Origin: Lepidodermella squamata | Taxonomy: Eukaryota; Animalia; Gastrotricha | Length of the DNA stretch: 64,000 bases | Direction of reading: 5' to 3' | Assembly (NCBI GenBank): GCA_047495785.1 | Contig: JBLDXI010000042.1 | Coordinates: forward strand, 2,728,001 to 2,792,000 | Shown here: positions 9,066-64,000 of the stretch, one piece after another | How positions within the stretch are numbered: position 1 is the stretch's first letter | Layout of the letters: each line of letters starts with the position of its first letter | Notes under the pieces: model-generated | Database searches by the model: none | Seen by the model: only the letters and a program-made list of their open reading frames with translations | Told to the model about the DNA's origin: nothing | Made by a program: the position numbers and the translations under genes

Positions 9066-9474
9066 CTTTTTTACTAATCGATTGAGCAATCCATTTCCTT
9101 GTTCTTCATTTTCGACTTACCTGAATAAGACCGTCCGCAAGAAAATGTGATAACTTGCACATGAGCAACAATCGAAATATTATTTTGTCTGCAATTCGCC
9201 AAAAATCGCCAAAAATTATCTCAGCTGTTCTTGTGGTCGGTCTATAATCAATAGTCTATTCCAATAAAAGCGTGTTATCTAACCTGCGTTTCCGTAATCA
9301 ACTGAGTTTTTCAATATTATCCACTTTTTATTCATTGGCAACTTCCATAGCTGTTCGATACATGGTTTGATCCGGACAAATGCTCAAACATCCGGTCGTC
9401 TTCAAACGCTATGTTCGTACTACATTAATGTCTGTATGTGATACTGTGAAGCGCACCACGCCTTTTATGTGAAA

Positions 9475-37934: not shown

Positions 37935-38882
37935 TCACTGGCAGCTATTTGAAGCTTCATCGGTCCATTCAGTCTGGTCGCCACTTTCTGTCGATTCAGC
38001 GTCAGACATTTCAGCATCTTCATTTTTAGAAGCAACGTGTTCCTGGTCAAACGATTTCGCACCAGCCTCGACCAGCGATTCGAAGGGGCTAGCAGTGAAC
38101 TGCTGCTGAACTTCCGCAGGTCGGTTCTCGACGACGACTGGCATGTGAATCATGACTGGTTGATGCGCAAGGTCGGGTTGAACGAACGAGGCGACGGGCG
38201 GTAATGGCGAAAGCGGGGCACTAGGCTTCGATAGTTGCTGAGCCAACGTCGGCATCATGGCCAAGGTCTGAGCAGTCTCCTCACGTTTTCGCCGCAGCTT
38301 TCCTTCGAGGGCACGACGATTCTGGAACCACACTTTGACCTGAAAAAAAATTCGAATAATAAAAATCCTCCTTAAAAATATTATTGCGATACAAACCTGG
38401 CGTTCAGTTAAGCCGAGAGTCCGTGACAGTTGCGCTTTTCGATCAGTGGTGATGTACATGCAAGAGCGGAACTCGACCTCGAGTGAACAGCGCTGAGCTT
38501 CCGAGAAAACAGCCCGCCGGTATCTGGCTCGACCCGACTCATATGAAGCATCTGGATTTCGTCGCCGTTTCGCCGGTTTCGATTTGGCCTTGGCATCTTC
38601 AGTCGATGATTCGTCAGGAGCAGCTAATTGCGGTCGATGTAATTCCGCGAGATTTGAATTTGGCACAAGGCGAAAACTTGGCAGCAGGGCGGGGAAAGCC
38701 GGCTGGGTGTGGGCGCGGGGCGGGAATTGAGACGACGCGAAATCGGGATGAAACTGTTCGGCAGTCGGAAACGGTTGAGGAAACGGTGTCGAGAAAAACA
38801 AGGGCTGCTGCTGCTGTTGTTGATTTTGTTGCTGCGGTTGATTTTGCTGATAAGCCGACGAAGGCAACTGAAGGTACATCAT
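37935..38882 (-). CDS. cdx: ANTP-class homeobox protein, divergent caudal/Cdx-like; intron 38396-38340
   Basis: Homeodomain RYRRAVFSEAQRCSLEVEFRSCMYITTDRKAQLSRTLGLTERQ|VKVWFQNRRALEGK; YIT..RK and NRRA.E.K are Cdx-type; orthology uncertain. Confidence 0.75.
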   Translation of the reverse strand: MMYLQLPSSAYQQNQPQQQNQQQQQQPLFFSTPFPQPFPTAEQFHPDFASSQFPPRAHTQPAFPALLPSFRLVPNSNLAELHRPQLAAPDESSTEDAKAKSKPAKRRRNPDASYESGRARYRRAVFSEAQRCSLEVEFRSCMYITTDRKAQLSRTLGLTERQVCIAIIFLRRIFIIRIFFQVKVWFQNRRALEGKLRRKREETAQTLAMMPTLAQQLSKPSAPLSPLPPVASFVQPDLAHQPVMIHMPVVVENRPAEVQQQFTASPFESLVEAGAKSFDQEHVASKNEDAEMSDAESTESGDQTEWTDEASNSCQ

Positions 38883-39499
38883 TATAATCGCGACCAGCAA
38901 AAAATATCGACGGTAATAAAGCGTCTATTACAGAAATAAAAATCATACGATAGTAAATGATAGCAATCAAAAGGACGACGATGGCCACATCCGAGTACTA
39001 TCACACACACACGAACGTAATGTCGAGTAACGAGTAATAAGTGCGCGCGGTGCAATTATGAAACGTAACTGGGCAATAATGACCTGATTCAGCGTCTTTG
39101 GCGGCTTTTATTACTCCACAACGCGCGGACTGACCTCGGCTGATCTTAAAGGCGGCGACTCTCTTTCATTTGACTCGGCTGTTTTTCAAATTACGCGCCC
39201 TCAATCTGGCAGGTTAACAGCTTTGCTTGCTTTTTTTTTTACCAATAAAGGAGACTTTCGTGATTGATAAGAAATAAGTAAAAATTAGGGGCAAAATGTG
39301 TTGTCACGCGTCGAAGAGAAAAATCGAGGCACCAAGGTTGATGTTTCACTGTGTCTACGCAAAAACTGTCCATCATCGCTGTTAAATCACGCCGTGGGGC
39401 GAAAAATCGAACGTGCTACTTTTAAGGCGGAACATTTATTAATTTCCAACTAATCTGCCAGTTGAATTATTCGTCTCGTTTATGACAATATAAACTGGA

Positions 39500-40081: not shown

Positions 40082-42639
40082 TTAGTAAAGGTTTATAGTG
40101 TTCAGTATCCAAGGAAGGGCTTTGCAAACCCTTCCGAAAATGTTCGGATATCCTTGCACATTGCATCGGCCATTCGAATCAGCCGCGACCCAGGACGCAA
40201 CGCCAATGATGAAAGAGCTATTCTTAAGCTGGCAGGTGAGTGCTCCACCGCTGTCGCCGAAACAAATCGACTGAGGACTGCCGTTTCCCGAACAGAGCTG
40301 GGCATCAGACAAAGGAACCTGCCAAGCTACAGCACAGTCGTTCGGAGAGCGCAATTTCATTTTTACAGATCGAGGCACGGCTGGAGCTGCTCCACCTAAA
40401 AAAGCTTGAAATTACCTCCATTTTAAATTTATTTATTTTCTTACTTTCGATTAACCCCCAGCCGGCTATTGAGCCTTCGGTACATCCGTCAATAGTCGCG
40501 CTGTAGTAACTGGTACCTTTTCGGCACGAATCATCACTCGGCAGATTGATAGGCCGAATGTTTTTCGTAGAATTGACAGATTTAACGAGTTTGATCATCG
40601 CAAAATCGTAGTTGAGCTGAAAGTCGTAGTTGATGTGTCGAACTATCCACAGCCACTGAGGATTCAATGCGCCTGGCTCCAGGCTTTTCGTGATATCACG
40701 CTGTCCGAGGTAAATTTTTATACTATAAGAGAAATGTTAACAACCGAGACCAATAGCTTCAAGGGCTTACTCTTGAACGTTGACGAAAGTTGGATAGGCT
40801 TTGTCGGTGATGCAATGAGCAGCAGTGAGGATCCAATTGTTTGAGATCAAACTGCCTGTACAGGATACTATAAGGCCGTTCGAGAATGATATCTTCAGGT
40901 AAGCCTGAAATTAGAGCAGTGGATAGGTAGAAAATGCTAACGGACGATACGAATGCAGGACAATGTTAAAAATAAGTATTTAAATACTCTAAAAAATTTA
41001 AATTCAGAAATTTTGATGTCCCATGTCACATCACGATCTCTGGTTTTCTAATTTAAAATTTTTAAAATTTATTAAAAATTTTTTAAATTGAAATCTTAGT
41101 TTTCATTTCAATTTTAATTTTTAATTTTTAATTAATTTTCAATAATTTTTCTTAGCATTTTATCGTTGAAGATTAAATAGAGTTTACCAGCCACGGCGCA
41201 TCTTTAAGCTGGATGTCCGCTCCACCGTAAATTCCAAGTTGAGGCAACTGCGAATCCTCCCTCGCCGCAAGCTCGGCTTCCTCATCGGAAACATGGGGCG
41301 ATTTCAGCTTGTTGTAAACACGCGGTATCAAGCCCGCCGATTGCATCGCCTCATTTCCATCAAAATGAGCCGCTATTTCGTTGTCGGTCATAGCGTGAAG
41401 GCTAATCAGCAGCTCGTCAAAGTCGAACGCGAATAAGCTATCGCCACCGATCACGTACGGGCAGTGGCTTATTTTTAAGCTGGAACCAGGTTCAAATTTC
41501 GTGGTATTCACCAACTTCGCATCAACGAAAACCTCCAATTTTCCGACATCGCCGCTGAAAATCACGCAAATTTGAGTAAATTTTAAGCTGGATGAATCCA
41601 AGCTCAGTGCAACGTTTAAATTTTCACGAATTGATCTAATCGTTATATCGAGCTTAAGTCCAGAAATCAGGGTTATTTTTGCGGAATTATCGTTGGATAA
41701 TATTGAACCAGCGCAATTTTCGATATTCTCGCATCGGAAGAAAAAGCACCAAGAAGCCTGCGAACCCAGCGCGACAGATTTCATTCCAGGTATTTCGATT
41801 TTACCTAGCTGAGACCCGTTAAAATATGCCGAACCGTACCCGCGAGCGACGTGAGATTTATTGAAATTTTCAATATCAACCCCGCCGGTTGGAAAAGTTG
41901 AGTACTTGCTGCTGGAAGAGTCGCGGAAATCGTCTTCAAACGCCATGTAAAGCAAACACTGTCGGCTTGAATCTGTCTGATTAGTTTCAACGTAAGTCGA
42001 ACAAGAGCAGTCGCTGATCGAAAATACCGTCCCTTCTGGGCAGTTAAAGGAAACGTTATTCCCCATAAGGAACGAGCCACTATTAGGACCAGGGTAAAGA
42101 ATGCTACCGGAACTATCTCGGCAAAATGAGCCATCGGGTGAAGTTTCGGGCGGCGTGAAATCTGCAGTTTGGTTGCTATGGAAACCGTTCTGGCAGGGAT
42201 CTTTGCAAGTAGAATTTTCATCGAAAACACAGCTGCAGTTCGATGATTCGAAGAAGGTTCCGAAAGGGCAGCACATCGGGTGTGAAATTCCGTTGGAACA
42301 TGAGAAGTAGGATGAGCAGCTATCAGGGTTAGCGAAACACCTCAAACCTGAATTGCTGCAAGCGTCGTAGCAGGATCTTTTCGGGTCCTCAGGGGCGCAT
42401 TGAAGAATTTCATCGCGCCAACTCTGCCCGGCTGGGCACTGCCGTAAGAAACCGATTGAACTTGTTTCATTCAGGTAAAAACACTGGTAATACGTGTGAC
42501 AATTGTCAGGATTTGCGTATAAATCCTTTGAGTTTCTACGGTTTTTACAGGTGAAGCAAAATAACGCATCTTTTGAGGCTAAAGTGTCACCCAATATCAA
42601 AACCGTAACAGCTAAAGCCAGCAAGAAATTTGGTAACAT
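40082..42639 (-). CDS. Secreted modular S1 serine protease: chitin-binding type-2 (CBM14)-like repeats + ConA/LamG-like domain + trypsin-fold domain; exons 42639-41188, 40904-40771, 40722-40445, 40395-40082
   Basis: Signal peptide; peritrophin-like Cys motifs; IYGG..APWL spliced to WILTAAHC, YDFAMIKL and ICFGDSGG (intact triad); intron phases checked. Confidence 0.88.
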
Positions 42640-43096: not shown

Positions 43097-43776
43097 ATGG
43101 CGACTAAAACTTCCATCTACATTGTCTATTATTCGATGTATGGCCATGTTCGGAAATTGGCCGAAGCTGTGAAAGCAGGTCTGGAGAAGGTCGACGGGGT
43201 CGAGGCTAAGCTTTTCCAAGTTGCCGAAACTTTGCCGAAGGAAGTTTTGGAGAAAATGCACGCGCCGCCTAAATCCGATGACCCAATTATCACAGCCGAA
43301 GAGCTGGCTAAAGCTGACGGCGTGTTGTTCGGAATCCCGACTCGATTCGGCTCAGCCTGCGCTCAAATCAAGACATTCATGGACTCGACTGGGCAACTGT
43401 GGTTTACCGGAGGTTTGCAGGGCAAACCGGCTGGAATTTTTGTAAGCACAGCCACGCTTGGCGGAGGCCAGGAAACTACGGCTATGACTTTCATCGGCCA
43501 TTTTGCTCATCACGGAATGCTTTTTGTGCCGACAGGTCGGAGAAAGTTGTAAATTTGTTGCTAGTAATGTAATTTGCTGTTATTTCAGGCAATAGCGATG
43601 CCTTTAAAGGTTTAAATGAAGTTCGAGGAGGTTCGCCCTGGGGAGCTGGTACCTATTCCGGCTCTGATGGCTCTCGCATGCCGTCAGAAGCCGAGCTTCA
43701 ACTTGCCTCTGACCAAGGAACGAATTTCGCTAAAACCGCCAAGGCCTTGAAGATTGGACGAGCTGCTTCAGCCTAA
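43097..43776 (+). CDS. wrbA: WrbA/FQR1-family NAD(P)H:quinone oxidoreductase copy 1; exons 43097-43535, 43589-43776
   Basis: YYSMYGH FMN loop, GIPTRFG, GGGQETT, HHGM, GGSPWGAG. Confidence 0.95.
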
Positions 43777-45526
43777 ACCCATCGCATGATTTTTTTGTCC
43801 GATTTGACCTGATTAAATGACATTTCCAAATTTAAAATTTTTAAGCCTGCCATGAACTGATTGTAATTTTTGTTGGGAAGAATAAATTTAGCTCCGGTGT
43901 AGCTTTAAACAGCTGATTTTTTAATATTTTCTATGCGTATTGCCTTCAATAAAGAATTTCTAATTATCGTGTATAAATTTTTCGAATTTTGGTGAAAAAA
44001 TAAACATTAGGTCTTACCGTTTTAATGATGTTTTTCGAGGTTTTTAAAATTAAGTCCCAATTCAGAAATAGGTCAATTATGGAACAAAGTTGTGTTAGGT
44101 GAGCCCTGATTTATCGTTAAAATTTGGTGATTTTACGATGTTTACCTGATTTTTAGCGCTTATTTGCATATGCATTAAATATAGCATTTCTTTAAAATCA
44201 AGTATTGCTCCAATCACACTGGGACTTACGCCATTCGAAAGCTCAAGAGACGGGGAATTTTATGCAACAAACCCTGTGACTTTATGGAGTTACCAGAATT
44301 AGCACAGAAGTTTTTCCGCAGTACTGAGTCGCAGTATTTTCAGATGCCTCTCGCTGATAGCCGCATTCTCATTTTTTCATCTGAGACATCGCCGGGTATA
44401 GGCGACAGAACTACTTACCTCAAACAGATGGCACAATGCTTTTGATGCACAGAAAAAAAAACTTGCATTATAGTTATCATTATCATGCACGCCCCCTTGA
44501 CTAGGTGAAGATGCAAAAAATTAGTTTACACCATCATCTCTTTCCATTCTGGGCAAGTCGTTCTCTCTCCCACCATCCACCCCGTGCGATATTCGGTCCA
44601 TTTTTCGTCGCACACTCCGATGTATACTGGCATGCTGGCGTCTTGGGCGGTGAAATCCATGCGTATTTGCGCAGGCAGAACACAAACAGACCACTATACT
44701 GCCTGCTTTAAAAGCCCTGACGTGAAAAAACAGCCTACATGCAGTAGTTAGCCGCTACATGACATGGCGCGTATGTATATCTGTATATCGTCATGCGCGG
44801 TGAAAAAAGTACACGAAACGACGTTTCGAGGTAAATCGAAAAATCGTATTTTTCAACTTTGAGAATATCGTCACATCAAAATTACCAGAAAGAATCGTCA
44901 AGAAGGATAATCGAACCCGCTCTTTCGAATGGCGCAATTCGTTTTCTTGTAGGATTCGTACTTTTTGCGCCACAGGTAGAAATGAACATCTATAGCTTTT
45001 TTGGTTTTTTTTTGCGGGTGAACACATGGTTTACGAGCGCCTCTTGTTTAATTCTTCGCGACCCCCACAATTTCAATGCTCAGATTTTCATTTTTATTTT
45101 TTATCATAAAATCGGAGCCTGACGAATCCATTTGCAACTTGTTCGTAAAGTGCCAAGGCTGTTTGCTAATGGAACTAGTTCGTGCTTATCGGCGTGTATT
45201 AGCTATGAATCATTCGCACTGGTGATTATTGATTTGAGCTATTTATTTATCTATGGAGCTATTGTATAAACAAGGGCCGCCAATAATTTTTACGATGCAT
45301 TCATTTTTGTGTGAGAACATACATTTAGTGCGTGGACTTGGCCCGTAGAAAAAAACGACCTCGTTAAAGGAAGAACCCAGTGGACATTTCAATGGGGTCT
45401 TTTGATCAATAAAGAATTTCGAAACCGGGTTGTCAAATTATTGTAGAGCGTGATGAGTTGATCGCGAATCCGTAAGTAATTTTCGGCCGGGTATGGACCT
45501 AGCACTTCTTCCGCGCGCATTATGTG

Positions 45527-45776
45527 ACCACTTTTTAGGCGGGAAACCGTTTGTTATCTGATTGGCTCATTCAAATGAGACGCGGGCGATTCAAACAAGC
45601 ATTTTTTTTCATGAAAATCGAGCTTTTCTGTCAAGGTTGCACGCGATTTGGTGAAAATAGCGCGCGAAAATGGAGTAAAAGCGTTGAAAATCAAAGACAA
45701 CTGCTCGTTCGAATCGCCCGCGTCTCATTTGAATGAGCAAATCAGATAAAAAACGGTTTGCCGCCAAAAAAGTGGT
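45527..45776. mobile_element. MITE with long imperfect inverted repeats
   Basis: ACCACTTTTT.GGCGG.AAACCGTTT..TATCTGATT.GCTCATTCAAATGAGACGCGGGCGATTC is mirrored at ~45708-45776; absent from the paralogous region upstream of copy 3. Confidence 0.8.
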
Positions 45777-45941
45777 TCCGCCAAAAGACGAATATGTAAA
45801 CCGATGTTTTATTAGACTCAGCTCTAAATTCTCGAATGTCTAACCTATTTTAGCTCTTTGAAAATTCTAAAAATATTCTCTTTTTTTCTTATCTTTTTCT
45901 TAGCTCTCCTATTTATTATAAAGGCTTGATTATAGGAAGAA

Positions 45942-46633
45942 ATGGCGAGTAAGACTCAAATTGCGATCGTCTATTATTCGATGTATGGCCACGTCCGAAA
46001 GCTTGCTCATGAAATTAAGAAAGGCGCCGAAAAAGTCGGTAATGTTCAAGTCACGCTGTATCAAGTTCCGGAAACCTTGCCAAAAGAAGTGCTCGAAAGA
46101 ATGCATGCGCCGCCTAAGCCTGATGATAGCATTGCCACACCCAACGACTTGAAGAAAGCCGACGGTGTTTTGTTCGGCATTCCGACTCGCTTCGGCAGTG
46201 CTCCAGCGCAGATGAAGTCATTCATGGACTCAACTGGCCTTCTGTGGACCCAAGGCGGCCTGGCTGGCAAGCCAGCTGGTACCTTTTTCAGCACTGGATC
46301 TCCGGGCGGTGGCCAAGAGACAACCGCCTTGACTTTCACTACGCATTTCGCTCATCACGGAATGATCTACGTCCCTCTAGGTAAAATTATTAAATTTTTA
46401 ATATTAAGGAGGATATTTTATTTTTATTTTGCTTTTCAGGATATGCTAATCCTGGCCTACAAAATTATAAGGAAGTTCACGGAGGTTCGCCGTACGGTGC
46501 TGGCACGTTTGCAGGCGACGGCTCTCGCCAACCTTCTGCCCTTGAACTTTCCCTTGCCGAAACTCAGGGTGAAAATTTTGCGAAAATAGCGAAAGCCCTC
46601 AAGCTCGGCAAGGAAATTGCTGATAAAAAATAA
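45942..46633 (+). CDS. wrbA: WrbA-family quinone oxidoreductase copy 2; exons 45942-46380, 46440-46633
   Basis: Same motifs; intron after VPLG. Confidence 0.95.
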
Positions 46634-46796
46634 CCTGGCTACACTTTGTATAATCAATTTCTTTTATATTATCTAAGCAGTGTTTGTGGTGAGATGCCAT
46701 ATAATTCAGTCCATCTTATTATCCTTAGTGCACGTTCGAAAGTAGCTGATCTATCAGCTTTATAGGCGATGTTAAAATAAACATTCTAATCATGTA

Positions 46797-47096
46797 CATT
46801 GTGTTTGAGGTTGTAAGTTGAAAAAAATCCGCACGCTGATTGGTCAGTTGGCTCGTATCCATGACTCCGCCTTGCTACTTGATCGTGCGATCCATAAAAT
46901 GTTTGCAAAAAATATCTTTTTATGAATGGTTTTACGCATTTGTTGGAAACGCGTGCTACGATACGGCCTTCAAAAAATAATAAAAGCCACAAATTATATA
47001 GATCGCACGATCAAGTAGCAAGGCGGAGTCATGGATACGAGCCAACTGACCAATCAGCGTGCGGATTTTTTTCAACTTACAACCTCAAACACAATG
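46797..47096. mobile_element. 300-bp MITE with ~96-bp apparently perfect TIRs, flanked by TA (Tc1/mariner-like target)
   Basis: 46793-46892 is the reverse complement of 47001-47100; TA at 46795-6 and 47097-8. Confidence 0.88.
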
Positions 47097-47495
47097 TACA
47101 AGATCTCGAGGAAGTTCATGGTGCCGCACTTATGCAGGCGACGGCTCTCGCCGACCAACTACCCTTTAACTTTCTCTAGCCGAAAGGAATCTCGCTAAAA
47201 CTGCCAAGGTCTTGAAGATTAGACGAGCTGCCTCGGCTCAAACTCACCGCATGATTTTCTGTCCAATTTGACCTAATTAAATGACTTATTCGAATTTCCG
47301 AAATACTATTTGTAAGCCTGCTATGAACTTATTGCAATTTTTGGGGAGAAATAAATTTGAGCTGAAATCAAGTTTCACACAATTAATTAGTTCGCTTTCT
47401 ATTTATATATACCCTTCAGCCTGGGGTGCTGCCGGTGTCTTATCAAGCGGGTAAAGTTCCGATGCAACCGACTGAGCTGGAACTCACACTTGGAT
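47097..47495 (+). pseudogene. wrbA: Mosaic wrbA exon-2 relics
   Basis: GAGGAAGTTCATGG..GCAGGCGACGGCTCTCGCC (copy 2/5 type), then a copy-1-type 3' end and UTR, then a copy-4-type piece TCAGCCTGGGG..GAGCTGGAACTCA. Confidence 0.8.
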
Positions 47496-48573
47496 TTGCC
47501 AGGCCGCTTTTTCTGGAATCCAGATTTGCTCTGGAAGGCAGCAGCTTGCTCATCAAAGTGAACGCGTGTTCCCTATAGGGGAATCGCTTGCCCCTATGAT
47601 GAAGACAATAGGTATACTACACGTGTGATCAATTTTTGTCTCATCCTTATCACGGGGTGGGCGACAGAACGGCTTACCTAGAACAGATGGCGTAATGCAC
47701 AGAAAAAACGCCATTACGCCATTCATTCCCATTCTAGGCAAGTCATTCTGTCGCCCACCTGCAATATATGACCCATTTTTTTTGTCGCACACTCCGATAT
47801 ACATGTCCTATGCCGGCATGTTTGAGTCTTAGGCGGTCAAATAATCCATGCGTATTAGCGCATGCAGAACAAACTCGAGATCAATAAAAACGAATATTTC
47901 AACTTTGAGGATCTCGTCACATACGTACCAGTTTGAATTATCACCGATGCTGCAAGAGGGGTATATTAGAACCCGCTCTTTCGAATGGCGCAATCCGTTT
48001 CTTTTTGGGATCGTACTTTTTGCGCCGCTATATGAACGTCGCTTTTTTTGTTTTTGCGTGAAAACATGGGTTGCGCGCAGGTTCGATTCTTCGCGACCTC
48101 CAATGGTTTTTAATGCTCAGATTTTCAATTTTTATTTTTATTTGATAATTAGGGGGCATGATCAACTCTTTTCAAAATTTTGAACTAATTTTCGTCAAGT
48201 GCCAGCCTTGTCAAGTGCCGCGATCGCGCCTATCAGCGTGTGCTAGCTATGAATCATTCACCTGATTATTTGAGCGATTTATTTATGTATGGAGCTGCTC
48301 TTGCAAAATGCGGTCAAAAAAATGCGCCAAAATTTTTTACGATGCATTCATTTTTCGCGAGGACTTTTCCCGTCGATAAAATGACCTCCTTTGGACTACG
48401 ACCCCAGCGGACATGCTCTTTTAAACCCTGAGAAATTATGAAACCGGGTATTCAAATTATTGTAGAGCGCGATGAGTACCTAGATTACGAATTTGACAAA
48501 GAAATTTTTTTCCGCGCGAAGTGGACCGATTGTCTAGCGTCTAGCTACTAGACTGCGCTCTTAATTTGCGAAT

Positions 48574-48627
48574 AAAATAAAAGAAAAAGATGAGAAACTC
48601 GAGTTTCTCATCTTTTTCTTTTATTTT
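48574..48627. repeat. Perfect 54-bp spacerless palindrome
   Basis: AAAATAAAAGAAAAAGATGAGAAACTC|GAGTTTCTCATCTTTTTCTTTTATTTT. Confidence 0.92.
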
Positions 48628-48683
48628 TCCGACTATTTCATAGCTCTCATATTTATCAGAATCACTTTATTTTATTGGAAGAA

Positions 48684-49835
48684 ATGGCGAACAAGACTCA
48701 GATTGCGATCGTCTATTATTCAATGTACGGCCACGTCCGAAAGCTTGCTCAAGAAATTAAGAAAGGCGCCGAAAAAGTCGGTAATGTTCAAGTCACGCTG
48801 TACCAAGTGCCGGAAACCTTGTCAAAAGAAGTGCTCGAAAAAATGCATGCGCCACCCAAGGCCGACGACCCGATTGCCACGCCTGATGACCTCAAGAAAG
48901 CCGACGGCGTTTTGTTCGGCATTCCGACCCGCTTCGGCAGTGCTGCGGCGCAGATGAAGGCATTCATGGACTCGACTGGCGGTCTGTGGATGCAAGGCGG
49001 CCTGGCTGGTAAACCGGCTGGTACCTTTTTCAGCACTGGCTCACCGGGCGGTGGCCAAGAGACAACCGCCTTGACTTTCACTACGCATTTCGCTCATCAC
49101 GGGATGCTCTACGTCCCTCTAGGTAAAATTACTGAATTTTTTAAATATTATGGATGAAACAAAATGGTAATTCGACCGACGACGTAACCCATATTTTCAA
49201 ACCCGCCAAAATATTTCTTTTCGGATAGAGAGCATCAACAACTAAGAAACTTAGCTCTTGTGATTTTTTCTTCGACGCAATGGCGAGGCTACAAAATTCA
49301 AAAACTGAAACCCACGCCAAATCATAGCAACGGTAGTCAAGGGGATTGTTCTCGCTACCTGTAGCGTTTCCTGGCGTGATATGCATAGTGAAGGTAAATC
49401 TTAATGGTCCCAGTATTCATGCACATAGTCTCGGCCTAGAATCGTCGATTTTTCATTTCTAAGAATTCGGATATAACCCCCAAAAGTAGGTATTTTCGGA
49501 CAGGTCAAACCTGCATTCCAGTCGATACTGTCTCCAAAATTTGCACCATCGTAGTCAGCGTGAAACATGGGTTGGGTCGTCGGTCGAATTACGCAATGGA
49601 TGCTTTTAATATTTTTCAAACTGAGAGTCTCTTCTGCTTTTTAGGACGTGCTAGTCCTGCACAAAACCCCAATGAAGTTAATGGGGGTTCGCCATACGGC
49701 GCTGGCACGTTTGCAGGCGACGGCTCTCGCCAACCTTCTGCCCGTGAACTTTATCTCGCCGAAACTCAGGGTGAAAACTTTGCGAAAATAGCGAAAGCCC
49801 TCAAACTCGGCAAAGAAATTGCGGATAAAAAATAA
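48684..49835 (+). CDS. wrbA: WrbA-family quinone oxidoreductase copy 3; exons 48684-49122, 49645-49835
   Basis: Same motifs; intron enlarged by an insertion. Confidence 0.93.
49167..49592. mobile_element. Non-autonomous TIR element in the copy-3 intron
   Basis: ~30-bp TIR GTAATTCGACCGACGAC..AACCCAT.TTT; sister copies 2 and 5 have a 59-nt intron here. Confidence 0.78.
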
Positions 49836-50196
49836 ACTGACTTACAGTTCGTCGTGCGCATGTCCTAATTGCGCGATAACGATGAAACATTGGTCTAATG
49901 ACCGGTGTCATTCGATCCGCCGTGATCGATCCGCCGTGATGACCCTTAGTTTTGCATCGGTGATATAATTTACTGAAATTTCAAGAAATAAAGCTGTTCT
50001 TTCGTTTTGGAAATGAACCCTCTTGGACATAGGACTATATACCGTGCGCGCCGTACACGACGAGTTCTTAATCATGGCTGGACTGTGCTATTTTTTCTTC
50101 TGTGTTCGAAAATAGCTGAACTCTCAGCTTTATATAGGCGATGTAAAAATAAGCATGATGTGAATTTTGCTGTCCCATTAAATTGTTCATGCTGTT

Positions 50197-50460
50197 AGAA
50201 GCCGAGCCCCAACTTGCTACTGCGACCAAGGAACGAATTTCGCTAAAGCAATGCTTTGAAAATCTGATGATCCGCTTCAGCCTAAACCCGTTGCATGATT
50301 TTTTGTCTGAGTTGACCTAATTAAATGACATTTCCAAATTTCCTTAGAATTTTTAATCCTGCGATGAACTGATTGCAATTTTTTTCAAAGAAATAAATTG
50401 AGCTCCTATGAAGTTTCAAGCAGCTGATTTATTTTGTTTTCTATTTATATACCCTTCAGT
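50197..50460 (+). pseudogene. wrbA: Relic of a copy-1-type wrbA 3' end and UTR
   Basis: AGAAGCCGAGC..AACTTGC..GACCAAGGAACGAATTTCGCTAAA..GCTTCAGCCTAAACCC matches 43686-43950. Confidence 0.8.
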
Positions 50461-50677
50461 AAAGAATTTCATCGAATTATTCATGGCGTATGAATTTTTC
50501 ATGCCGTGTTTTCATGTGCGCAAAATCGTATATGCCGCGCACGCGACATTCAGTATAAAAACACCCGCATCGCGTAAAATCGACCTATTTTGAAGCACCT
50601 TCGGCGCACAAAAGGACCGGTTATTCCGACCTCACTGTTTTACTCTGAAAAATAATTAGCGAATATTTCGTGAAAAA

Positions 50678-51363
50678 ATGTCTGATAAGGTGAAAATCGC
50701 GATAGTCTACTACTCGATGTACGGCCATATTCGAAAAATGGCTCAAAGCGTGAAAAGCGGCGTTGAAAAAGTCGGCAACGTCGAGGTGACTCTGTATCAA
50801 GTCCCCGAGACCCTACCGAAAGAAGTCCTCGAAAAAATGCACGCCCCGCCGAAAAGCGACGACCCGATCGCGACTGGGGATATTCTGAAAAGCGCCGATG
50901 GCATTCTATTCGGAATTCCGACTCGATTCGGATCAGCCTGCGGCCAGATGAAATCGTTCATGGACTCAACCGGCGCGCTTTGGATGACAGGCGCTCTTCA
51001 AGGCAAGGCCGCTGGGATATTTTTCGGATCTGCTATTCAAGGCGGTGGCCAGGAAACAACAGCCCTAACGTTTATGACACATTTCGCTCATCACGGCATT
51101 GTATTCTGCCCTCTTGGTAATTTTTTTGTAAAATTCAGAAATTTATTTTTAATTATTTTATTTCAGGAAACGCCAGCCCGGCAATGGGGGATAACAGCCA
51201 GGTGAGGGGCGGATCAGCCTGGGGCGCCGGTGTTCTTGCGGGCGGTGACGGTTCCAGGCAGCCGAGTGAGCTGGAACTCAACCTTGCATCGATTCAGGGC
51301 GAAAATTTCGCCAAGACTGTAACTGCGCTGAAAATCGGCCGAGAATTGGTTGACAAAAAATGA
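50678..51363 (+). CDS. wrbA: WrbA-family quinone oxidoreductase copy 4; exons 50678-51116, 51167-51363
   Basis: Same motifs; complete spliced ORF. Confidence 0.95.
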
Positions 51364-51998
51364 ATTTTCCTTATCAGACTTCAGGACTGGAATATTTATT
51401 ATACCAATGAACTATTATGATATATTAAATCTGTGATCAATTTCTGTCCCATCACCTTATCACTTTTTCTGGAAAATGTAATTCAGAGTCAAAAATAAAC
51501 ATTACGGTCTAATGAATACAATTTTTTATCAAAAACTGAGTCGCAGTCTTTTCAGAGGCTGATTTATGCCGCTCGCTGATAGCCGCATTCTCATTTTTTT
51601 CATCCGAGATAGATGACCTATTTTTTTTGTCGCACACACTCCGATGTGTATGTCCTATGCCGGCATGCTGGAGTCTTAAGCGGTCAAAATGTGTATTTAC
51701 GCATGCAGTACAAAAACATACCGCTACTGCCTGCTATAAAAGCCCTGGCGTGAAAAAAACAGACGTAGCTTGCCGCTGCCTCACCTGGCGCGTATATATA
51801 TGTTGTAGACCACCGCGGGAGTAGGCTATTGATTGCAGAACGAGCTAGCAAATATCACGCAAATATAAGCTTTCTATTCAACTAGTGGTCTACTCTAATT
51901 CAGCGAGTTTCTTACCTATTTTCGGGCTTTAAAAATCTGAAACTTCTCCTTCCTTAGTTTCGATATTATATTGATTTATCACTTGATTATTGGTAGAA

Positions 51999-52690
51999 AT
52001 GGCGAACAAGACTCAAATTGCGATCGTCTATTATTCGATGTATGGCCACGTCCGAAAGCTTGCTCTAGAAGTGAAGAAAGGCGCCGAAAAGGTCGGCAAT
52101 GTTCAAGTCACGCTGTACCAAGTTCCGGAAACCTTGCCAAAAGAAGTCCTCGAAAAGATGCATGCGCCGCCCAAGGCCGACGACCCGATTGCCACGCCTG
52201 ATGACCTGAAGAAAGCTGATGGCATTTTGTTCGGCGTTCCGACTCGCTTCGGCAGTGCTGCGGCGCAGATGAAGTCATTCATGGATTCGACTGGCGGTCT
52301 GTGGATGCAAGGCGGCCTGGCTGGCAAGCCGGCAGGTACCTTTTTCAGCACTGGATCTCCAGGTGGTGGCCAGGAGACAACCGCCTTGACTTTCACTACG
52401 CATTTCGCTCATCATGGAATGCTCTACGTGCCTCTAGGTAAAATTTTTAAATTTTTAATATTAAGGAGGATATTTTATTTTTATTTTGCTTTTCAGGATA
52501 TGCTAATCCTGGCCTTCAAGATTTCAAGGAAGTTCACGGTGGTTCGCCGTACGGTGCTGGCACGTTTGCAGGCGACGGCTCTCGCCAACCTTCTGCCCTT
52601 GAACTTTCCCTTGCCGAAACTCAGGGCGAAAATTTTGCAAAAACAGCGAAAGCCCTCAAACTCGGCCGGGAAATCGCCGAGAAAAAATAA
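51999..52690 (+). CDS. wrbA: WrbA-family quinone oxidoreductase copy 5; exons 51999-52437, 52497-52690
   Basis: Near-identical to copies 2 and 3, including the intron of copy 2. Confidence 0.95.
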
Positions 52691-53233
52691 ACTGGCTTAA
52701 GTTTATAATTACAAATGGACTGTCACATGTTTCTCAGTTCCAAGCTTCTATTCATAAAATGTTTCTGTATCTATCTGAGCAGAGTTCCTTTTGTGGTGAT
52801 ATTCACTATAATTCAGTCCATATGTTCATCCTTACTGCGTTCGAAAATGGCTGATCTCTCAGCTTTATAATATGTATAGGCGATGTTAAAATAAACATGA
52901 TGTGAATTGCACTTGCTGTCCTATTAATTTTTTCAAGCCTTTCACGGCGAAATTGATCTCGAGGTACCTCAAGTAAAAACATGCTGATGTCGCTGCAATT
53001 TGATACAAGGTCAGATTTTTGAAGATTACAGCTTTAATTGAGGTGAGCTCATCATCCTCTCTGCTGAGTATCTAATTTCTTAGCAGAGGCCGGAAAAAAT
53101 CGATCAATTTTCAGCCGCGCTATATAAAGCCGTGTGAAAAGGCTCATCACTCGCCATAACAAATTCTCTTAAATTAAACACAACCGCAATTCTTGACAAT
53201 TTTTGCCGTGATACCTTGATTTTCGAAGAAAAA

Positions 53234-54026
53234 ATGACCACTACTAAAATTGTTATTATTTACTATTCGATGTACGGCCATATTCGTAAAATGGCCGAGG
53301 CTGTTAAAGAAGGCATGGAGAAGGTAGCTGACGTAGAGGTGACTCTGTACCAAGTCGCTGAAACGCTGCCCGATGAAGTGCTCGAAAAAATGCACGCGCC
53401 GCCGAAATCCGATGACCCCATCGCAACGCCTGAAGTTATGAAGGACGCTGATGGCATTATGTTCGGAATTCCGACTCGATTTGGATCAGCCTGTGGGCAA
53501 ATTAAGGCGTTCATGGACTCGACTGGCGGACTGTGGCAGTCTGGCGGTGTGGCAGGAAAGCCTGCTGGGACATTTTTCAGCTCGGCTCTTATGGGAGGCG
53601 GTCAGGAGACAACTGCCCTGACTTTCCTAACCCATTTTGTTCATCATGTAAGTCACAATTTTTGCCCATAGGATTTCCCAAATAATACGACTCTTTGATT
53701 TACAGGGCATGGTGTACGTGCCTTTGGGTAAGATTATTTACAATTTTTGAGAAATATTTCTTCAATGCGTAAATTTTCAGGTGGAGCAGCTCCTCTTTCC
53801 AACATGGATGAACCTCATGGTGGTAAGATATTTGCTGTATATGGCCGATTTTTTTCTAATTTTCTGCGAATTTTCAGGCTCTGCTTATGGTGCGGGTACT
53901 ATTACGGGTTCGGCTGGCACTAGAATGCCGAGTGAAATCGAAACTACCGCAGCGACGCTTCAGGGTGAAATATTTGCTAAAACTGCCAAAGCTCTCAAAC
54001 TTGGCCGCGAAGCTCTCGAAAAATGA
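53234..54026 (+). CDS. wrbA: WrbA-family quinone oxidoreductase copy 6; exons 53234-53647, 53706-53727, 53781-53822, 53878-54026
   Basis: Same motifs; three introns, including 22-nt and 42-nt exons. Confidence 0.92.
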
Positions 54027-54734
54027 GAAGCATGCAGGCGATATAAGTACTGCCAGCCCACTACCGTAACTGGTTCAATTTCAATTATTGCTGTAATAAC
54101 CAATTTGCTATGGTAGAAATGATGAGCATTTTCTTGTTTCGTGACTTGTTTAATTATCCAGTTGCATGTAATAACAATTTTGTGGATTAAATTCTGACCT
54201 GAAAAATAATGAGATTGATACCAGCAATTAGGTCAAAGTTATTAGACGCGGCGCACCCGTTTTGTCTAGCCAGACTTAAATAATACAGTACTTTTTAATG
54301 ACACGTGGCATCTTCAAACCAGTACACTCAGCCCCCGCGTTGTATGCCAAAAATCATCCGCCTTAACTTTTATTCATCCTTCAATTTTCGAATCGCTTTT
54401 TTTACCTTGAATTTTCGGGCTGGTTTCTTTTTCAACTTGACATACCTAGATAACAATTCTTGTCCGTTGATTTATTTAAAAACATCAAGCTACCGGGATG
54501 CAGAGAAGCACGTATCTAGAAATTAAGGAGGATGATGCCGCTCGAAATTGTTTTTTTTCGAGCCACAAGCTCTAAAGAGTTGTTGTTTTCAGAGTGTTGT
54601 CAGACAGTTGTCAGGTTATACAAGATTGTTATTGAATCTTCTTTTATCAACCCAATCCAGTTTTACTATCATTTCGAGCTTATTAATAATAGATTCAACT
54701 ATATTTATTTTTGAATTATTTTATTCTGATAAAA

Positions 54735-55516
54735 ATGACCAAGGCCAAGATTTTCGTCGTGTATTACTCATTGCATGGCCATATTCGAAAAATGGCCGAA
54801 GAGGTGAAGAAAGGCGTTGAAAAGGTTGCCGACGTGACTGCCAGTCTCTACCAAGTCGCCGAAATTCTGCCAAAGGAAGATTTAGAAAAGATGCATGCCG
54901 CGCCGAAAGCCGACCACCCAATTATCACGCCGGATGAACTGGCAAATGCTGACGGCATTCTGTTCGGATTCCCGACTAGGTTCGGCGCTGCTCCTACTCA
55001 AATTAAGGCCCTATTAGACGGAACTGTTGCTCTTTGGAAAACTGGCGCCCTTGTAGGGAAACCTGCCGGGGTTTTCTTTGGGTCTGCGATTCAAGGTTAA
55101 AAATGCAAAATATTGCTGAATAGATTTCAAATCTGGATTTAGGTGGCGGCCAGGAAACAACCGCCCTGACTTTTGTCACGCAGTTTGCTCATCACGGCAT
55201 GGTATTTGTTCCGATGGGTAAATTTGTTCAAATTTTCTCCGATTCAGGAATTTTTGTGTTTCCTCCTATAGGTTACACCCACCCTGCCTTGGGAAATATG
55301 ACTGAAATTCATGGCGGTGAGTCAGCTTAAAATTATTTGATGTCTCAATTTATATCTGAAACTCTAGGTTCGCCTTATGGAGCTGGGACTCTTTCCGGTT
55401 CTGATGGGTCGCGCCAGCCCTCCGAGCTGGAACTTACGTTAGCCGCCCATCAAGGCGAGAGCTTCGCGAAATTTACCAAAGCTGTTGTAACCGGAAGAAA
55501 TGTCCTCGCTAATTGA
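54735..55516 (+). CDS. wrbA: WrbA-family quinone oxidoreductase copy 7; exons 54735-55095, 55143-55217, 55272-55316, 55368-55516
   Basis: YYSLHGH, GFPTRFG, spliced QG|GGQETT. Confidence 0.92.
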
Positions 55517-55673
55517 GCTGGTCTTTCAGAATCTTTCCCGATTAAAAAACGGTCTCTTCTTATTTGTCTGCGCATGCGTTATGTGATGTAACAATCAAGC
55601 TTTCGAGCAGCTTATTAGCGACTAATAAATCTAAGATTCTTGGTTCGCTCATTTTTCAATTTTAATCTCGAAA

Positions 55674-56948
55674 ATGACAAAGACTCAAGTTTTCATCGTT
55701 TACTACTCGATGTATGGCCACATTCGAAAACTGGCCCAAGAGATGAAGAAAGGCGTTGAAAGCGTGCCGAATGTTGTAGCCACGATGTACCAAGTAGCCG
55801 AAACCCTGCCCCAGGAAGTTCTGTCGAAAATGAAAGCCCCAGAAAAATCAAACGATCCGATCATTCAGCCGCAGGATCTGGCAAAACCCCACGGGATCCT
55901 GTTTGGAATACCGACGCGTTACGGTGCTGCTCCGGCTCAAATCAAGACTCTAATGGATGGGACTGGTGCGCTTTGGATGAATAATGGCTTAGTTGGGAAG
56001 CCGGCTGGGGTTTTCTTCAGCACAAGCACCCTTGGTGGCGGGCAGGAGACAACGGCCCTGACTTTTGTCACCCAATTGGCGCATCATGGAATGGTTTACG
56101 TTCCCTTGGGTATGGCACTCTCGTTTAATTTCAACATTTTAATTTTATTAAAATTTCGTCGTGAATTTTATGTGTAAATTTCCTAAATTATTGAAAATAA
56201 GCAAAATTAGATTTGAGCGGCTAGATTTTTCGAGTTTGCGATAACTCGAGTTTGGATAACTCCAATTATCGATTTCAAAAATTAGTGATTTCTCCGATCT
56301 TAACTGGAAGCCAATAATATCTTGGTTTCTACCTAGCTGATGGTTAGCTAAAATGAAAAATCCCTAGGTCATGAATTTTGATCAGTATCGATCAAGAGCA
56401 AAGAGCAAAGAATCCGAAAAATTTAGTACTAGAACCTCGAATTTTACGAAACAAATATTTACGACCTTCTGATAATTAAAAGTGAGGTTTTGTGAAATTT
56501 CGCGAAAATCAACATTTTTTTATTCTTATTGGCCACTAAAATTAACGTTGATTCTCTGACCTCGTTGATAATGAGCCTTCTCATTTCCTTTTAATTGCTG
56601 ACCATTATTAATTATAGCTTGCTTTCTTTCCTCAAGTTAACAATAATTATGATAATTTTCGACTTAACACCCTTTATTTCCTCTGCTTTCACAGGCTACA
56701 TCAATAAAGCACAGATGAACATTGACGAGGTTCACGGCTCGAGTGCCTACGGCGCTGGAACAATCGCCGGTCCGGACAACGCGCGACAGCCGTCGGCTCT
56801 CGAACTTTCGATCGCGCGCACGCATGGCGAACATTTTGCTAAAATGACACGCGCTCTTATGCTGGGCCGCGAGGCAGCTGACAACGAGCGCAAGTTGAAG
56901 CGCGACGAAGATAACCCATCTGAGCGCAATCCATACCAAGATTCATAA
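55674..56948 (+). CDS. wrbA: WrbA-family quinone oxidoreductase copy 8; exons 55674-56109, 56695-56948
   Basis: Same motifs; ~20-aa charged C-terminal extension. Confidence 0.92.
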
Positions 56949-58934
56949 AATGGCTAAATTTCGCCCTGATAAACGCATTTGATTGATGCGGAACTATGAC
57001 ACCAAATAAACTTTTCTAACTCGTCCCAAAACTAATTTTTCTAAAATTAAAGAATAAACATGTTCGGTTCAAGATTTTAATATCGATTCAGACAATAATA
57101 TCTGCCTTTACTTTTGCCGGTAGTTTTCTGTTAAAATATTTGACATCAAGCTGTCCAGCGAAAATATGTTCTATTTATCGAGCAAATGTCCTGATTTTAA
57201 CCTATTTTTCGACCCAATTTTTAGTGAAAAAGTGCGCGCTTAAGCTGCACGTTTATTGACCCATTATTGCGCATTAATTTGGACCTATTTTCGCTACTAA
57301 TCGGCGGTGTTGTTTTTGGGCGCGGCGCTGTCACAATAATAATAACTGCTTGTTTTTGTCGCGCAAATACAAATGAATTCCTCATTACGCGCGCGCGCAC
57401 ACAATCGCCCGCGGCCGAAAGTGTACCCGCAAATCCTGCTGCGCCCCCTTGAGTTTGTTTAGTTACATATTTTTTCGATCCGAACTACAACAAGTGTATA
57501 ATCACACCTTGTAGATTGTAATGCAAACTTTTTTGCGGTCTTTTTTTACATTTGATGCGTGCATTTTGATCGATCGCTTTTTACGCGCGCGATCTGTATT
57601 ATATGCAAGTCGCATAATAAAAGTATTATACCCGCATGAAACGCGACCGATTCGTAGTAAGGAGTAGTAGTGGTGAGAATGGAGGGCGGCGCGGCGCTAA
57701 AAATCGATTTGCTATATAGATATAATGTAATAATATTTTATTTGCGTGTACATTGCCGCGCGTTGAAAATCGATGCGTTTTTCATTCGCACATGCATCGC
57801 GCGCCTTTTTCGCTAATACACGCTCGCGCTATGTCGCATAGGCAGTAAAAGCTGCTATAAGTCGCCCCTTATAGAACTGCTGCTGTTCCTGCGCCCCGGT
57901 TGACGATGGCGTTGTTTCTCATCGTCACGCACACGTTTGATATATCGCGCGCCAAATTTTATATATACAACGCGCCCTTCGTTTCGCCTAAAATATATAT
58001 TAGTATTATTATTCATGCATTTCACGGCCGAATATAATATTAATACAGACAAAATATGGACACATTATACAACTCCCAAAGTCGCGCTGTAATAATAGCA
58101 ATAATATATATCGTATAAAAATAGTCAAGTCTCCTTCGGCCAGCCTCTCGTTCCCTACTTGCTACATCCCGCTATACGTCCTCGTCGCCAAATAAAAAGT
58201 TACAAAATGAGAAAAATATTGAAATTAGATGCTCTTTCCTTTCGCATTATTATTATAACTTGCGTCTCTTAGGCGGAGAAAAATATCAATCAGAATAATA
58301 GTATTATTGAACAATTCAATCTTGCTGATTTCTGCTTGTTGAATGTTACTATCAAAAATAACGTCATTTTCCCACAGCTAGACAAATATTATACTATTGT
58401 CAATATTGTAATAGTAGTTTATCATCTTCCGATTCTTCAAATAATAATAATATATTCAAGATTTCCCAACCAGAAAGCCGCCCTCTAAGCTGGGTGTAAT
58501 AGCCCTAGTTTATAACACTTTATGCACATTTTATGCGCATAAATTTGTTTGCTAAAATCTTGCGGCCAGTTCACATGAGTTATAGTTTTGTTTTTATTTG
58601 CAATTTCGGCGATTTTCATGGAGCGTAGAAAATTTTATTATATAGAGGTGTCAAAATCAATGCGCTTTTTTTCGTTCGGAAGCCGACTTGAAAATTTTTT
58701 CCCCTCACGCAATCGACCGAATTGCGGTCATTTTCTGCTCAGCCTCTATATCGATTTTCACATTTTTTTCAACCGACTAGAGCGTGTTTTTCTATTAGTT
58801 GAATCTGTTTTTTTCTGTACAATATCTCGGAAAATCTTTCAAGGCCCGACCGTTCAAGGCCTGGCGAGATGAAGCGACGGGCCATTTTCGTTAACTGATA
58901 TTTGAAATTGCCTGATCGAATCTGATTCTTCGCA

Positions 58935-61900
58935 ATGACCTCCGTCAAGGTTGCTGTTCGTGTTCGGCCGTTCAACAACCGCGAACTCGCGTTGAACGCA
59001 AAATGCGTCATTTCTATGACCGGCCAGTCTACAAGTACATTTTACCATAAAATTTGGATGATTTTTTATAAATATTTTTTTACAGCGATAAAAAATCCTA
59101 AGGATGAGAAGCAAACAAAGGTCTTTACCTACGATCACTCCTATTGGTCCTTTACTGATGTGAGTATTATCGGAGATTTTTTTCAAATTTTTAAATGATT
59201 TTTCTTTGTTTAGACGAAAGATCCTCATTTTGCCAGTCAGCGCCAAGTTTACCGCGATATTGGCCAGGAATTTCTCGAGCATGGCTTTGATGGCTACAAC
59301 GTTTGCATCTTCGCTTATGGCCAAACCGGTGCGGGTAAAAGTTACACGATGATGGGCCGGTCGAGTGACCCGAAAGAGGCTGGAATAGTGCCTCAATTAT
59401 GCCGCGATCTCTTCCAGCGAATCAACGCAGCACAGGCATCAGACGCCGACCTTCGATTTTCCGTCGAAGTCAGTTACATGGAGATCTATTGCGAGCATGT
59501 TCGCGATTTGTTGAACCCGGCTAGTAAAGGCAATCTTCGAGTTCGCGAGCACCCGTTACTCGGGCCCTACGTCGAAGATCTAGCTAAGCTGGTCGTCACC
59601 TCATATGATGATATTCAAAATCTGATGGATGAAGGCAATAAAGCGAGAACGGTGGCTTCGACTAACATGAACGAAGCGAGTAGCCGGTCACATGCTGTTT
59701 TTACGATAATTCTAACGCAACACAAATACGACGCCGGGATGGGCATTTCAGGCGAGAAGGTGTCTAAAATCAGCCTGGTCGATCTGGCTGGCAGTGAACG
59801 GGCCGAGTCGACTGGGGCGAAGGGTGTCCGTTTAAAGGAGGGTGCCAATATCAACAAATCTCTCGTCACGCTTGGCAAGGTCATCTCGGCTCTGGCGGAA
59901 CTTGCTGTAAGTTCGATCATAGATTAAGGTGGATTTTACGCGTCATTTTTTTCGAACGAAAATAGGGTGCTGATCAGGTGGGTATTTTGTGCTTGTGGAA
60001 ACCTTGGATTTTGCATGAATCAAATAATTGCCCTATACAAAAATTAGAAAAAAATTATTGATGTTTTTTGCTCACCTTGTGTGGTTTTGTTGCATTTTTG
60101 CCCTCTTGATTAATTTTTGAATTTTTTTGAAATTTAAATTTTTTTTGCAGAGCAAGAAAAAAGGCGGTAGTGCTGGGAAGCCGAAGCAGGACTTCATCCC
60201 TTACCGAGATTCGGTGCTAACATGGCTGCTAAAGGAGAGCTTGGGCGGCAACTCGAAAACGGCAATGATTGCCGCAATCTCGCCAGCCGACGTCAACTTC
60301 GACGAAACGTTATCCACCTTAAGATACGCTGATCGGGCTAAACAAATTGTTTGCAAGGCCGTTGTTAACGAAGACGCGAATGCTCGCATGATTCGCGAAC
60401 TTCGCGATGAGGTCGAGCGATTGCGGCAATTGCTGCGTATCAAGGGTATTGACGTTGAAATGGAGTCGGTGCCTGGCCAGGGTTCGCCCGAACAGCCCAC
60501 TGCGCCGGGTATTAGCCCGCCGTCTGATACACCGGCGAAGCAGCTCGTCGACACTGCGACTGATAATTTAAGCAGTTTGAACCCAGATGTGAAGAAACCG
60601 TCGACTTCATCTCAGAAGCGAGTTTCAGTCACGCGTTTAGCTAGCGTGTCCGGGCCTGGAGGTTCAACGACGAAGGAAGAGCAGGATGCGATTGAGCGGT
60701 TGAAAGTTAACGAGAAGCTGATTAGCGAGCTCAATGAATCTTTCGAGGATAAGGTCCGCAGAACGGAGAGATTGAAAAAAGAGCGACTGGTCGCACTTCA
60801 AGAAATGGGCATCAATGTTGTCCGAATGGAAAGTGGTGTCACCCTTGGAATCTGCTCACCCGATGTAAGCACCTTACTTCAAATTTTAATTTCCAAAAAA
60901 ATAATCATTCATTTTTATTTTGAATTTTCTGAAATAAATAAATAAATTTAAAATTTTGAAATTTTGAAATTTTGAAATTTTGAAAATATTAAATTTCGAA
61001 AATGAAAAAATTTGAAATATCGACAATTTGGAAATTAAAAAATTTAAACTTCATATTTTTCCATTTTCAATTAATTTGAATTTTCTTGTGAATAATTTTT
61101 CAATTTATTTTACCTCTAAATTTAGACACCTCACCTGGTCAACCTCAACGAAGATCCAGTTATGTCCGAATGTCTGATTTACTACCTAAAAGAGGGTCTA
61201 ACCCACGTTGGCCGATCGAGCACGAATCAAATCCTGGATATCGTGCTCAATGTTGACAGCATCCTTCCGGAGCACTGCGAGTTTGAAAACATCGACGGCA
61301 AAGTCACGCTAACGCCTTGCCCAGGTGCTCAGTGCTACGTGAATGGCCAACTTGTCACCACCCCAACCGCGCTCATGTCCGGGAATCGCGTTATTCTCGG
61401 CAACAATCACGTTTTTCGCTTCCAAAATCCGAAAATGGCCAGGGAACAGGCGCAGCTGAGCGGCGCGAAGCCTGATAAAGAGCAAGCTATCGACTGGTCA
61501 TACGCCTATGCCGAGCTGTTGGAGAAACAGGGCATTGACATGCGGAAGGAGATGGAGGAGCGGCTGCAGGCCCTTGAAGACCAGTACCGGCGAGAGCGCG
61601 AGGATGCGGAGATTTTCTTCGAGAAGCAAAAACGTGATTACGAACGCAAAATTCTAAGTCTCCAACAGGAGGTTGAAATGAGCCGGTCTATGATGTCCTC
61701 CAGTATTTTATTCGAACAAAGTAGTGCTTTCGATGAAACTGAACAAGGTTCGTATTTTTTAAATTCTTGAAAAATTAAAATTAAATTGAATTTTAAAATT
61801 TTAAAATTAATATTAAAAGTTGAATTCAAATTTTTATTTTAAGGTGATAAAATCGATGTTGACGCGGATGAAGTTCGAATTCTTGGCGAAAGAGAGCTGC

Positions 61901-63790: not shown

Positions 63791-64000
63791 GTACATTTAT
63801 TTTTCGAATTTTCAGTTATTTTTTTAGTTGGTAGAAAAATCAAAGACAATTCTTGGAGATTTTCAAATAAGTTAAATTTTGTTGGTAAATTTTTTCTGAA
63901 AATTCGAAACGCACCATTTTTGGCTAATTTTTGAAATTTGAAATTTGAAATTTGAAATTTGAATATTTTTTGAAAAATCAAATTTTAAGGTGGATTTTTT

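Follow-up and report, generated by a model that had tools for sequence, protein, structure and literature searches.

The DNA analysed here, a window of 64,000 nucleotides from the gastrotrich Lepidodermella squamata (contig JBLDXI010000042.1), carries between its positions 43097 and 56948 eight intact, co-oriented genes for WrbA/FQR1-type (type IV) NAD(P)H:quinone oxidoreductases (NQOs) of 208-229 amino acids, all encoded on the plus strand. Exons were located using six-frame open reading frames and tblastn searches with the copies' own exons, which returned eight first and eight last exons, and gene models were built from the junction sequences; the reading frames are open in all eight models. 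Five genes of two exons, c1 (43097-43535 and 43589-43776; 208 residues), c2 (45942-46380 and 46440-46633; 210 residues), c3 (48684-49122 and 49645-49835; 209 residues), c4 (50678-51116 and 51167-51363; 211 residues) and c5 (51999-52437 and 52497-52690; 210 residues), are followed by two genes of four exons, c6 (53234-53647, 53706-53727, 53781-53822 and 53878-54026; 208 residues) and c7 (54735-55095, 55143-55217, 55272-55316 and 55368-55516; 209 residues). The last gene, c8 (55674-56109 and 56695-56948; 229 residues), has two exons, and its product ends in a charged tail some 20 residues long. As none of the eight proteins has an N-terminal extension, they are probably cytosolic.

The family assignment made in an initial annotation of this stretch is borne out by protein profiles, conserved residues and the nearest solved structures. 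FMN_red (PF03358) is the best Pfam match in all six copies scanned (c1, c2, c4, c6, c7 and c8), while Flavodoxin_2 (PF02525) comes second in c2, matches more weakly in c1, c4, c6 and c7 and does not match c8, which argues against membership in the NQO1/NQO2 type. Exon 1 alone exceeds the cut-offs of both equivalog hidden Markov models (132.5 bits for TIGR01755 and 141 bits for NF002999) in c1, c4, c5, c6 and c8, with 142-163 and 156-174 bits, respectively; c2 and c3 are 91-96% identical to c5. The first exon of c7 (120 amino acids) scores 112 bits with TIGR01755 and 121 bits with NF002999, under the cut-offs only because it is a fragment. The FQR1-like motifs quoted in the annotation are found in c2, c3 and c5. 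For the metatranscriptome protein P0001, a close relative of the array copies (see below), the nearest solved structures are the PnpB-type NQO 4LA4, Escherichia coli WrbA 2R96 and yeast Pst2 5MP4 (E-values of 1e-56 to 1e-60).

Conservation was assessed over 40 columns, defined by at least 93% conservation in 82 non-animal homologues. At least seven of the eight copies retain 36 of these columns, including the SxxGH phosphate loop, PTRxG and a tryptophan that has been placed in the catalytic site (PMC10451263), and the family-invariant FMN and active-site features that were checked (SxxGH, PTRxG, Trp, GGQE, HHG and GGxxxG) are present. By homology, each protein should bind FMN, oligomerise and reduce quinones with NAD(P)H by two electrons. 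The copies differ at the residue just after the intron shared by all of them, which aligns with position 143 of E. coli WrbA and is tyrosine in 94% of homologues; it is asparagine in c1 and c4, arginine in c3 and glycine in c6. Within the family, variation is highest in the roughly 12 residues that follow. In E. coli WrbA, Tyr143 has a role in the active site and the loop after it borders the substrate pocket, although a literature search yielded no confirmation of either point.

All introns begin with GT and end with AG, and 11 of 13 measure 47-59 nucleotides, most of them ending in TTTCAG. A single phase-1 intron, placed after a conserved V-P-x-G, interrupts c1 to c5 and c8, and the same site is used in c6 and c7, so that it is common to all eight copies. 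The latter two genes have three introns each, sharing a second site before S-P/A-Y-G and carrying one private intron apiece. Both long introns are secondary: that of c3 (49123-49644, 522 nucleotides) contains an insert of about 430 nucleotides with 30-nucleotide inverted ends (49167-49196 and 49563-49592), and that of c8 (56110-56694, 585 nucleotides) is crossed by a contig from an independent DNA run (X1) that lacks 476 nucleotides of it (56120-56595). The 59-nucleotide introns of c2 (46381-46439) and c5 (52438-52496) differ at one position, whereas the first exons of these genes are only 89.5% identical, a contrast suggestive of gene conversion at this spot or of a mosaic origin.

Two relics lie among the genes on the same strand, an exon-2 fragment resembling c1 with an in-frame stop and gaps (47110-47238) and a 3' end, likewise similar to c1, that carries a frameshift (at about 50190-50290). 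Self-comparison shows that flanks were duplicated together with the genes, the spacer between c1 and c2 resembling those that precede c3 and c5. The pattern is consistent with a unit of two genes having undergone unequal crossing-over repeatedly, its c1-like member decaying afterwards. Between copies there are also self-complementary, hairpin-forming stretches at 45527-45776 (77% complementarity), 46789-47104 (83%) and 48574-48627 (100%), which may be mobile elements or artefacts; DNA amplified by multiple displacement amplification (MDA) is prone to palindromic chimeras.

Pairwise synonymous divergence (dS) was set beside the ratio of nonsynonymous to synonymous change (dN/dS). The young trio c2, c3 and c5 shows dS values of about 0.31-0.33 and dN/dS of 0.14-0.17. 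For every other pair dS exceeds 1.7 or has reached saturation, and dN/dS, where computable, is 0.10-0.17. Synonymous saturation in most pairs indicates that the array is old, and every copy is under purifying selection. The gene expansion proposed in the initial annotation is real and ancient, while its adaptive value, in detoxifying quinones or under hypoxia, is putative.

Independent reads were compared over positions 50950-56949, spanning c4 to c8, using the DNA run X1 and a run from another study of 2015 (X2). Contigs of X2 skip exactly 51117-51166 in c4, 52438-52496 in c5, each of the three introns in c6 and intron 1 of c7, and poly(A) runs follow about position 52911 after c5 and 54144 after c6. 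Given this splicing and polyadenylation, X2 behaves as RNA, and c4 to c7 are transcribed and spliced at the modelled junctions. Over c8 there is no X2 contig. One variant contig of X2 over c5 differs from it at 10 positions in 181 nucleotides, from c3 at 12 and from c2 at 25, which hints that c3 is expressed too. The DNA run X1 covers all 30 bins of the compared region; over c5 it is several times as deep as over the neighbours, as expected if near-identical words from c2, c3 and c5 pile up there, and this depth is not readable as copy number.

The 5' end of c5 (51978-51998) is joined in one X2 contig to 17 nucleotides (AATTTGATTTGTGTCTA) that stand before position 51995 and are absent from the whole window, and an AG lies two nucleotides upstream of the ATG. 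A non-genomic 5' end next to an AG fits spliced-leader trans-splicing. In the 5' untranslated region of the transcript that encodes P0001 (L005), the 17-nucleotide leader-like sequence was not found. From the stop of c7 to the start of c8 there are merely 157 nucleotides (55516-55674), and, given spliced leaders, these two genes could share a transcript. No enrichment is seen for TGACNNNGC, the core of the antioxidant response element (30 observed against 23.5 expected), and the upstream regions of the copies have no 9-mer in common.

The array is embedded among animal genes identified by domain searches. Upstream lie a homeodomain gene (37938-38900) and a gene with CBM_14 and Laminin_G_3 domains (chitin-binding/LamG; 41173-42639), both on the minus strand, and downstream a KIF1-type kinesin with Kinesin_assoc, FHA and KIF1B domains on the plus strand (58934-63793, continuing past the window). 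Gene models and flanking domains together confirm what had been noted from the letters alone, namely eight intact, co-oriented, intron-bearing copies plus relics between metazoan-type genes. In base composition the copies are the same as the adjoining animal genes (GC content 0.50-0.53, and 0.45-0.57 at third codon positions). The GC content of the published L. squamata assembly (43%, PMC11660948) agrees with that of the window.

An orthologue in the same setting emerged from an exhaustive profile search. One match, a reading frame of 151 amino acids (P0122) on a metagenome scaffold (L001), extends into an intron that occupies the same V-x-L-G position, and the full gene on that scaffold (2309-2744 and 2810-3009) is intact and has the phase-1 intron of the array copies. 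It lies directly upstream of a kinesin gene (4844-11479 of the scaffold) with the same series of domains as the kinesin in the window, and the kinesin exons of the two are about 70% identical in DNA. The scaffold belongs to a related animal with the orthologue at the same chromosomal spot. It carries one copy, beyond which 2.3 kb free of copies reach to the contig end. The kinesin, whose position and order are kept, is a useful anchor for comparing both genomes. In a tree of 50 rows the scaffold gene is sister to c7 (support 99/94), the next branches out being c8 and P0001, while c1 to c6 form the other half. Given this placement by c7, at least the divergence of the c7/c8 group from the c1-c6 group seems older than that of the two species.

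To establish how far the family extends, three word-indexed protein searches were evaluated over their best 120 matches each and other listings over their best 150, many of these matches being unnamed. Further searches comprised the exhaustive profile search of 1.8 billion representatives and a scan of Joint Genome Institute (JGI) metagenome contigs. The best matches of c5, at 63-70% identity, come from plants, oomycetes, diatoms, haptophytes and unnamed eukaryotic transcripts alike. With a profile of the divergent copies and P0122, only P0122 and P0001 rank above other eukaryotes among the matches listed, and the same search recovered a protein of the ichthyosporean Chromosphaera perkinsii. 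A query with this protein added Sphaerothecum destruens and Pigoraptor vietnamica, and the identities of all three holozoan protists were confirmed by EukProt accessions (EP01135, EP00126 and EP01136, respectively). The gene is also found in early-diverging fungi, an amoebozoan and Rhodelphis. Among the matches listed in the protein, profile and metagenome searches, there are no further members of the animal clade than the scaffold gene with its fragment P0122, and P0001.

The sole animal-labelled match listed is a frog record, which falls among seed-plant and fern rows in the tree; judging by this placement we take it for probable plant contamination. The JGI contig scan gave no relative above 66% identity, and a feature search of a protein atlas returned bacterial clusters only. 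Four microbial-mat contigs (L080, L081, L084 and L085) were considered as clade members and rejected, as their intron is placed elsewhere and their positions are outside the animal clade. Three JGI metagenome or metatranscriptome sequences (L007, L008 and L010) form a tight eukaryotic WrbA-type group with long N-terminal extensions rich in proline, alanine and glutamate, which adjoins early-diverging fungi in a quick tree; the C-terminal end of L007 is almost as in c5, and the tails of L008 and L010 are of the AGR type. We found no record of WrbA or FQR1 in invertebrates in the literature searched, and the paper describing the L. squamata genome makes no mention of quinone reductases or horizontal transfer (PMC11660948).

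Phylogenetic trees place the eight copies, the orthologue on the scaffold and P0001 in one well-supported animal clade within the eukaryotic radiation. In a FastTree analysis of 275 rows, Chromosphaera is sister to this clade (SH-like support 95). An IQ-TREE mixture-model analysis of 92 rows recovers the clade with 99/91 and again places Chromosphaera as its sister (70/87). In the 50-row tree the clade (100/97), Chromosphaera, Sphaerothecum and an algal group of mixed composition all branch from one polytomy; streptophytes, which form their own clade (98/86), fungi and bacteria all lie away from it, and a branch with 100/97 support splits the bacteria from all eukaryotic rows. In none of the four trees is the animal clade nested within a donor group. 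Approximately unbiased (AU) tests on the 50-row subset reject a clade of animals and streptophytes (p=0.0087, 27.7 log-likelihood units), but do not reject a clade of animals and the three Holozoa (p=0.12). The broad phylogeny suggested as a check in the initial annotation thus sets bacteria and streptophytes apart and is compatible with a holozoan affiliation.

Since the gene occurs across eukaryotes, including the unicellular organisms most closely related to animals, retention with losses is a sufficient explanation for its occurrence in L. squamata, and we consider it probable that it descends from the single-celled ancestors of animals and disappeared from most other animal lineages. The annotation had left the choice between horizontal acquisition and patchy retention; the three holozoan protists and the syntenic orthologue favour retention, while transfer from plants or bacteria finds no support. 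Vertical descent, like enzyme activity and physiological role, is what we infer, and several points weigh against this interpretation. The tree backbone is weak and unresolved; with 59 rows including metagenome sequences the animal clade persists (97) while Chromosphaera joins the oomycetes, and keeping all Holozoa together costs 14.8 log-likelihood units relative to the free tree. No further animal carrier is among the best 120 matches of the three protein searches, beyond which divergent animal homologues could be missed, so that vertical descent requires many independent losses. As to function, spliced RNA is seen for c4-c7 within the region compared (c4 to c8); c8 is altered at two near-invariant residues (Asp74 to His and Gly162 to Ser), and the enzymatic role of the proteins is predicted by homology.

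With no other animal carrier found, an old transfer from a protist into animals has to be considered as well. The donor would be a non-plant eukaryote (an alga, a stramenopile or another eaten protist) and the recipient an ancestor of the gastrotrich lineage, followed by intron gain, drift in composition and amplification. We consider such an event less likely than retention. It would account for the lack of other animals among those best 120 matches and for the grouping of the animal clade with assorted algal and stramenopile sequences where the tree has little resolution. On the other hand, that clade is enclosed by no donor group, three holozoan protists carry the gene and one of them is its nearest neighbour in two of three trees, the AU test does not reject the grouping with all three, and the gene is older than a species divergence so remote that synonymous sites are saturated.

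A land plant or streptophyte alga as donor is very improbable, even though the copies are 65-70% identical to plant FQR1 and many plant proteins are among the best matches, since oomycete, haptophyte, ichthyosporean and other protist proteins are equally similar and the streptophytes form a separate clade whose union with the animals the AU test rejects. The likeness to FQR1 does not hold up as a sign of a plant source: the copies look FQR1-like because the whole eukaryotic family is 60-70% identical. Still less credible is a transfer from bacteria, the classic home of WrbA, where the family is abundant and to which the protein-atlas clusters belong; identity to bacterial metagenome matches is only 41-55%, and the bacterial rows, including a named deltaproteobacterial type IV NQO, lie behind the 100/97 branch. 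Contamination by foreign DNA, or copies inflated by amplification chimeras, can practically be dismissed: the published assembly was indeed made from MDA-amplified DNA (PMC11660948) and some copies are separated by self-complementary stretches, but the copies differ by 8-42% in protein and in their intron sets so that neither collapse nor inflation of repeats explains them, animal genes flank them on a single contig, their host-type short introns are spliced out in the independent RNA of 2015, and a second DNA data set covers c4-c8.

On the reading of inheritance with losses elsewhere, the gene would have adjoined the KIF1-type kinesin before this species split from the relative represented by the scaffold, and the array would have grown through unequal crossing-over involving units of one and of two genes. 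Purifying selection has acted on every copy, and the loop following the conserved intron has diverged among them. By homology, the proteins would detoxify quinones and protect membranes as antioxidants, avoiding semiquinone radicals. We know of no membrane or eisosome association for the animal copies.

Comparison with characterized relatives places the array in context. The plant enzymes FQR1 of Camelina (P0053) and QR2 of Triphysaria (P0010), of about 200 amino acids, are 63-70% identical to the copies over exon 1 and share their motifs and equivalog models. Unlike them, the copies fall outside the streptophyte clade, have a C-terminus of the KALKLGR type, form a tandem of eight, contain host-type short introns and have the tyrosine after the conserved intron replaced in four of the eight. 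The proteins of Chromosphaera (P0285), Sphaerothecum (P0363) and Pigoraptor (P0356) belong to the same family, with 60-62% identity to members of the animal clade (62% for P0122 and 61% for P0001); their sister relation to that clade is weakly supported (70/87) and shifts with sampling. E. coli WrbA (PDB 2R96 and 3B6I) and the yeast and Candida proteins Pst2, Pst1, Pst3 and Ycp4 (PDB 5MP4) show the same type IV signature and an FMN-type flavodoxin-like fold, matched here by sequence through P0001, but bacterial and fungal sequences form clades separate from the animal copies. Candida likewise has a multi-gene family, of four members with antioxidant roles (PMC4556627).

The mammalian enzymes NQO1 and NQO2 (DT-diaphorase) carry out the two-electron quinone reduction with NAD(P)H that is predicted for the copies, but they belong to a different, FAD-binding family (Flavodoxin_2), whereas the copies match FMN_red best. 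In Candida, the quadruple mutant is rescued by NQO1 and by E. coli wrbA alike (PMC4556627). Quinone reductases of type IV are known from bacteria, fungi and plants and are missing in mammals, for which reason they were proposed as antifungal targets (PMC4556627). The statement in the annotation that the family is absent from animal models therefore stands for mammals, with the addition that holozoan protists carry it.

It is tempting, if rather speculative, to propose that gastrotrichs, perhaps alone among the sampled animals, kept or early acquired this enzyme, and that eight diversified paralogues, differing in the pocket tyrosine and loop, handle different dietary quinones and electrophiles and fill the place that NQO1 has in vertebrates. 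If this were true, these compounds would come from algae, bacteria and detritus in the diet. The biochemistry is expected to be ordinary. Here a well-known enzyme family is newly seen, in expanded form, in an animal. Its known range is extended by an expressed, selectively maintained set of eight genes in an animal, together with a syntenic orthologue and holozoan homologues. The case also serves as a warning that high identity to plant proteins alone is no pointer to a plant donor, and it offers a concrete starting point for asking how often 'non-animal' enzymes of small invertebrates are survivors rather than transfers.

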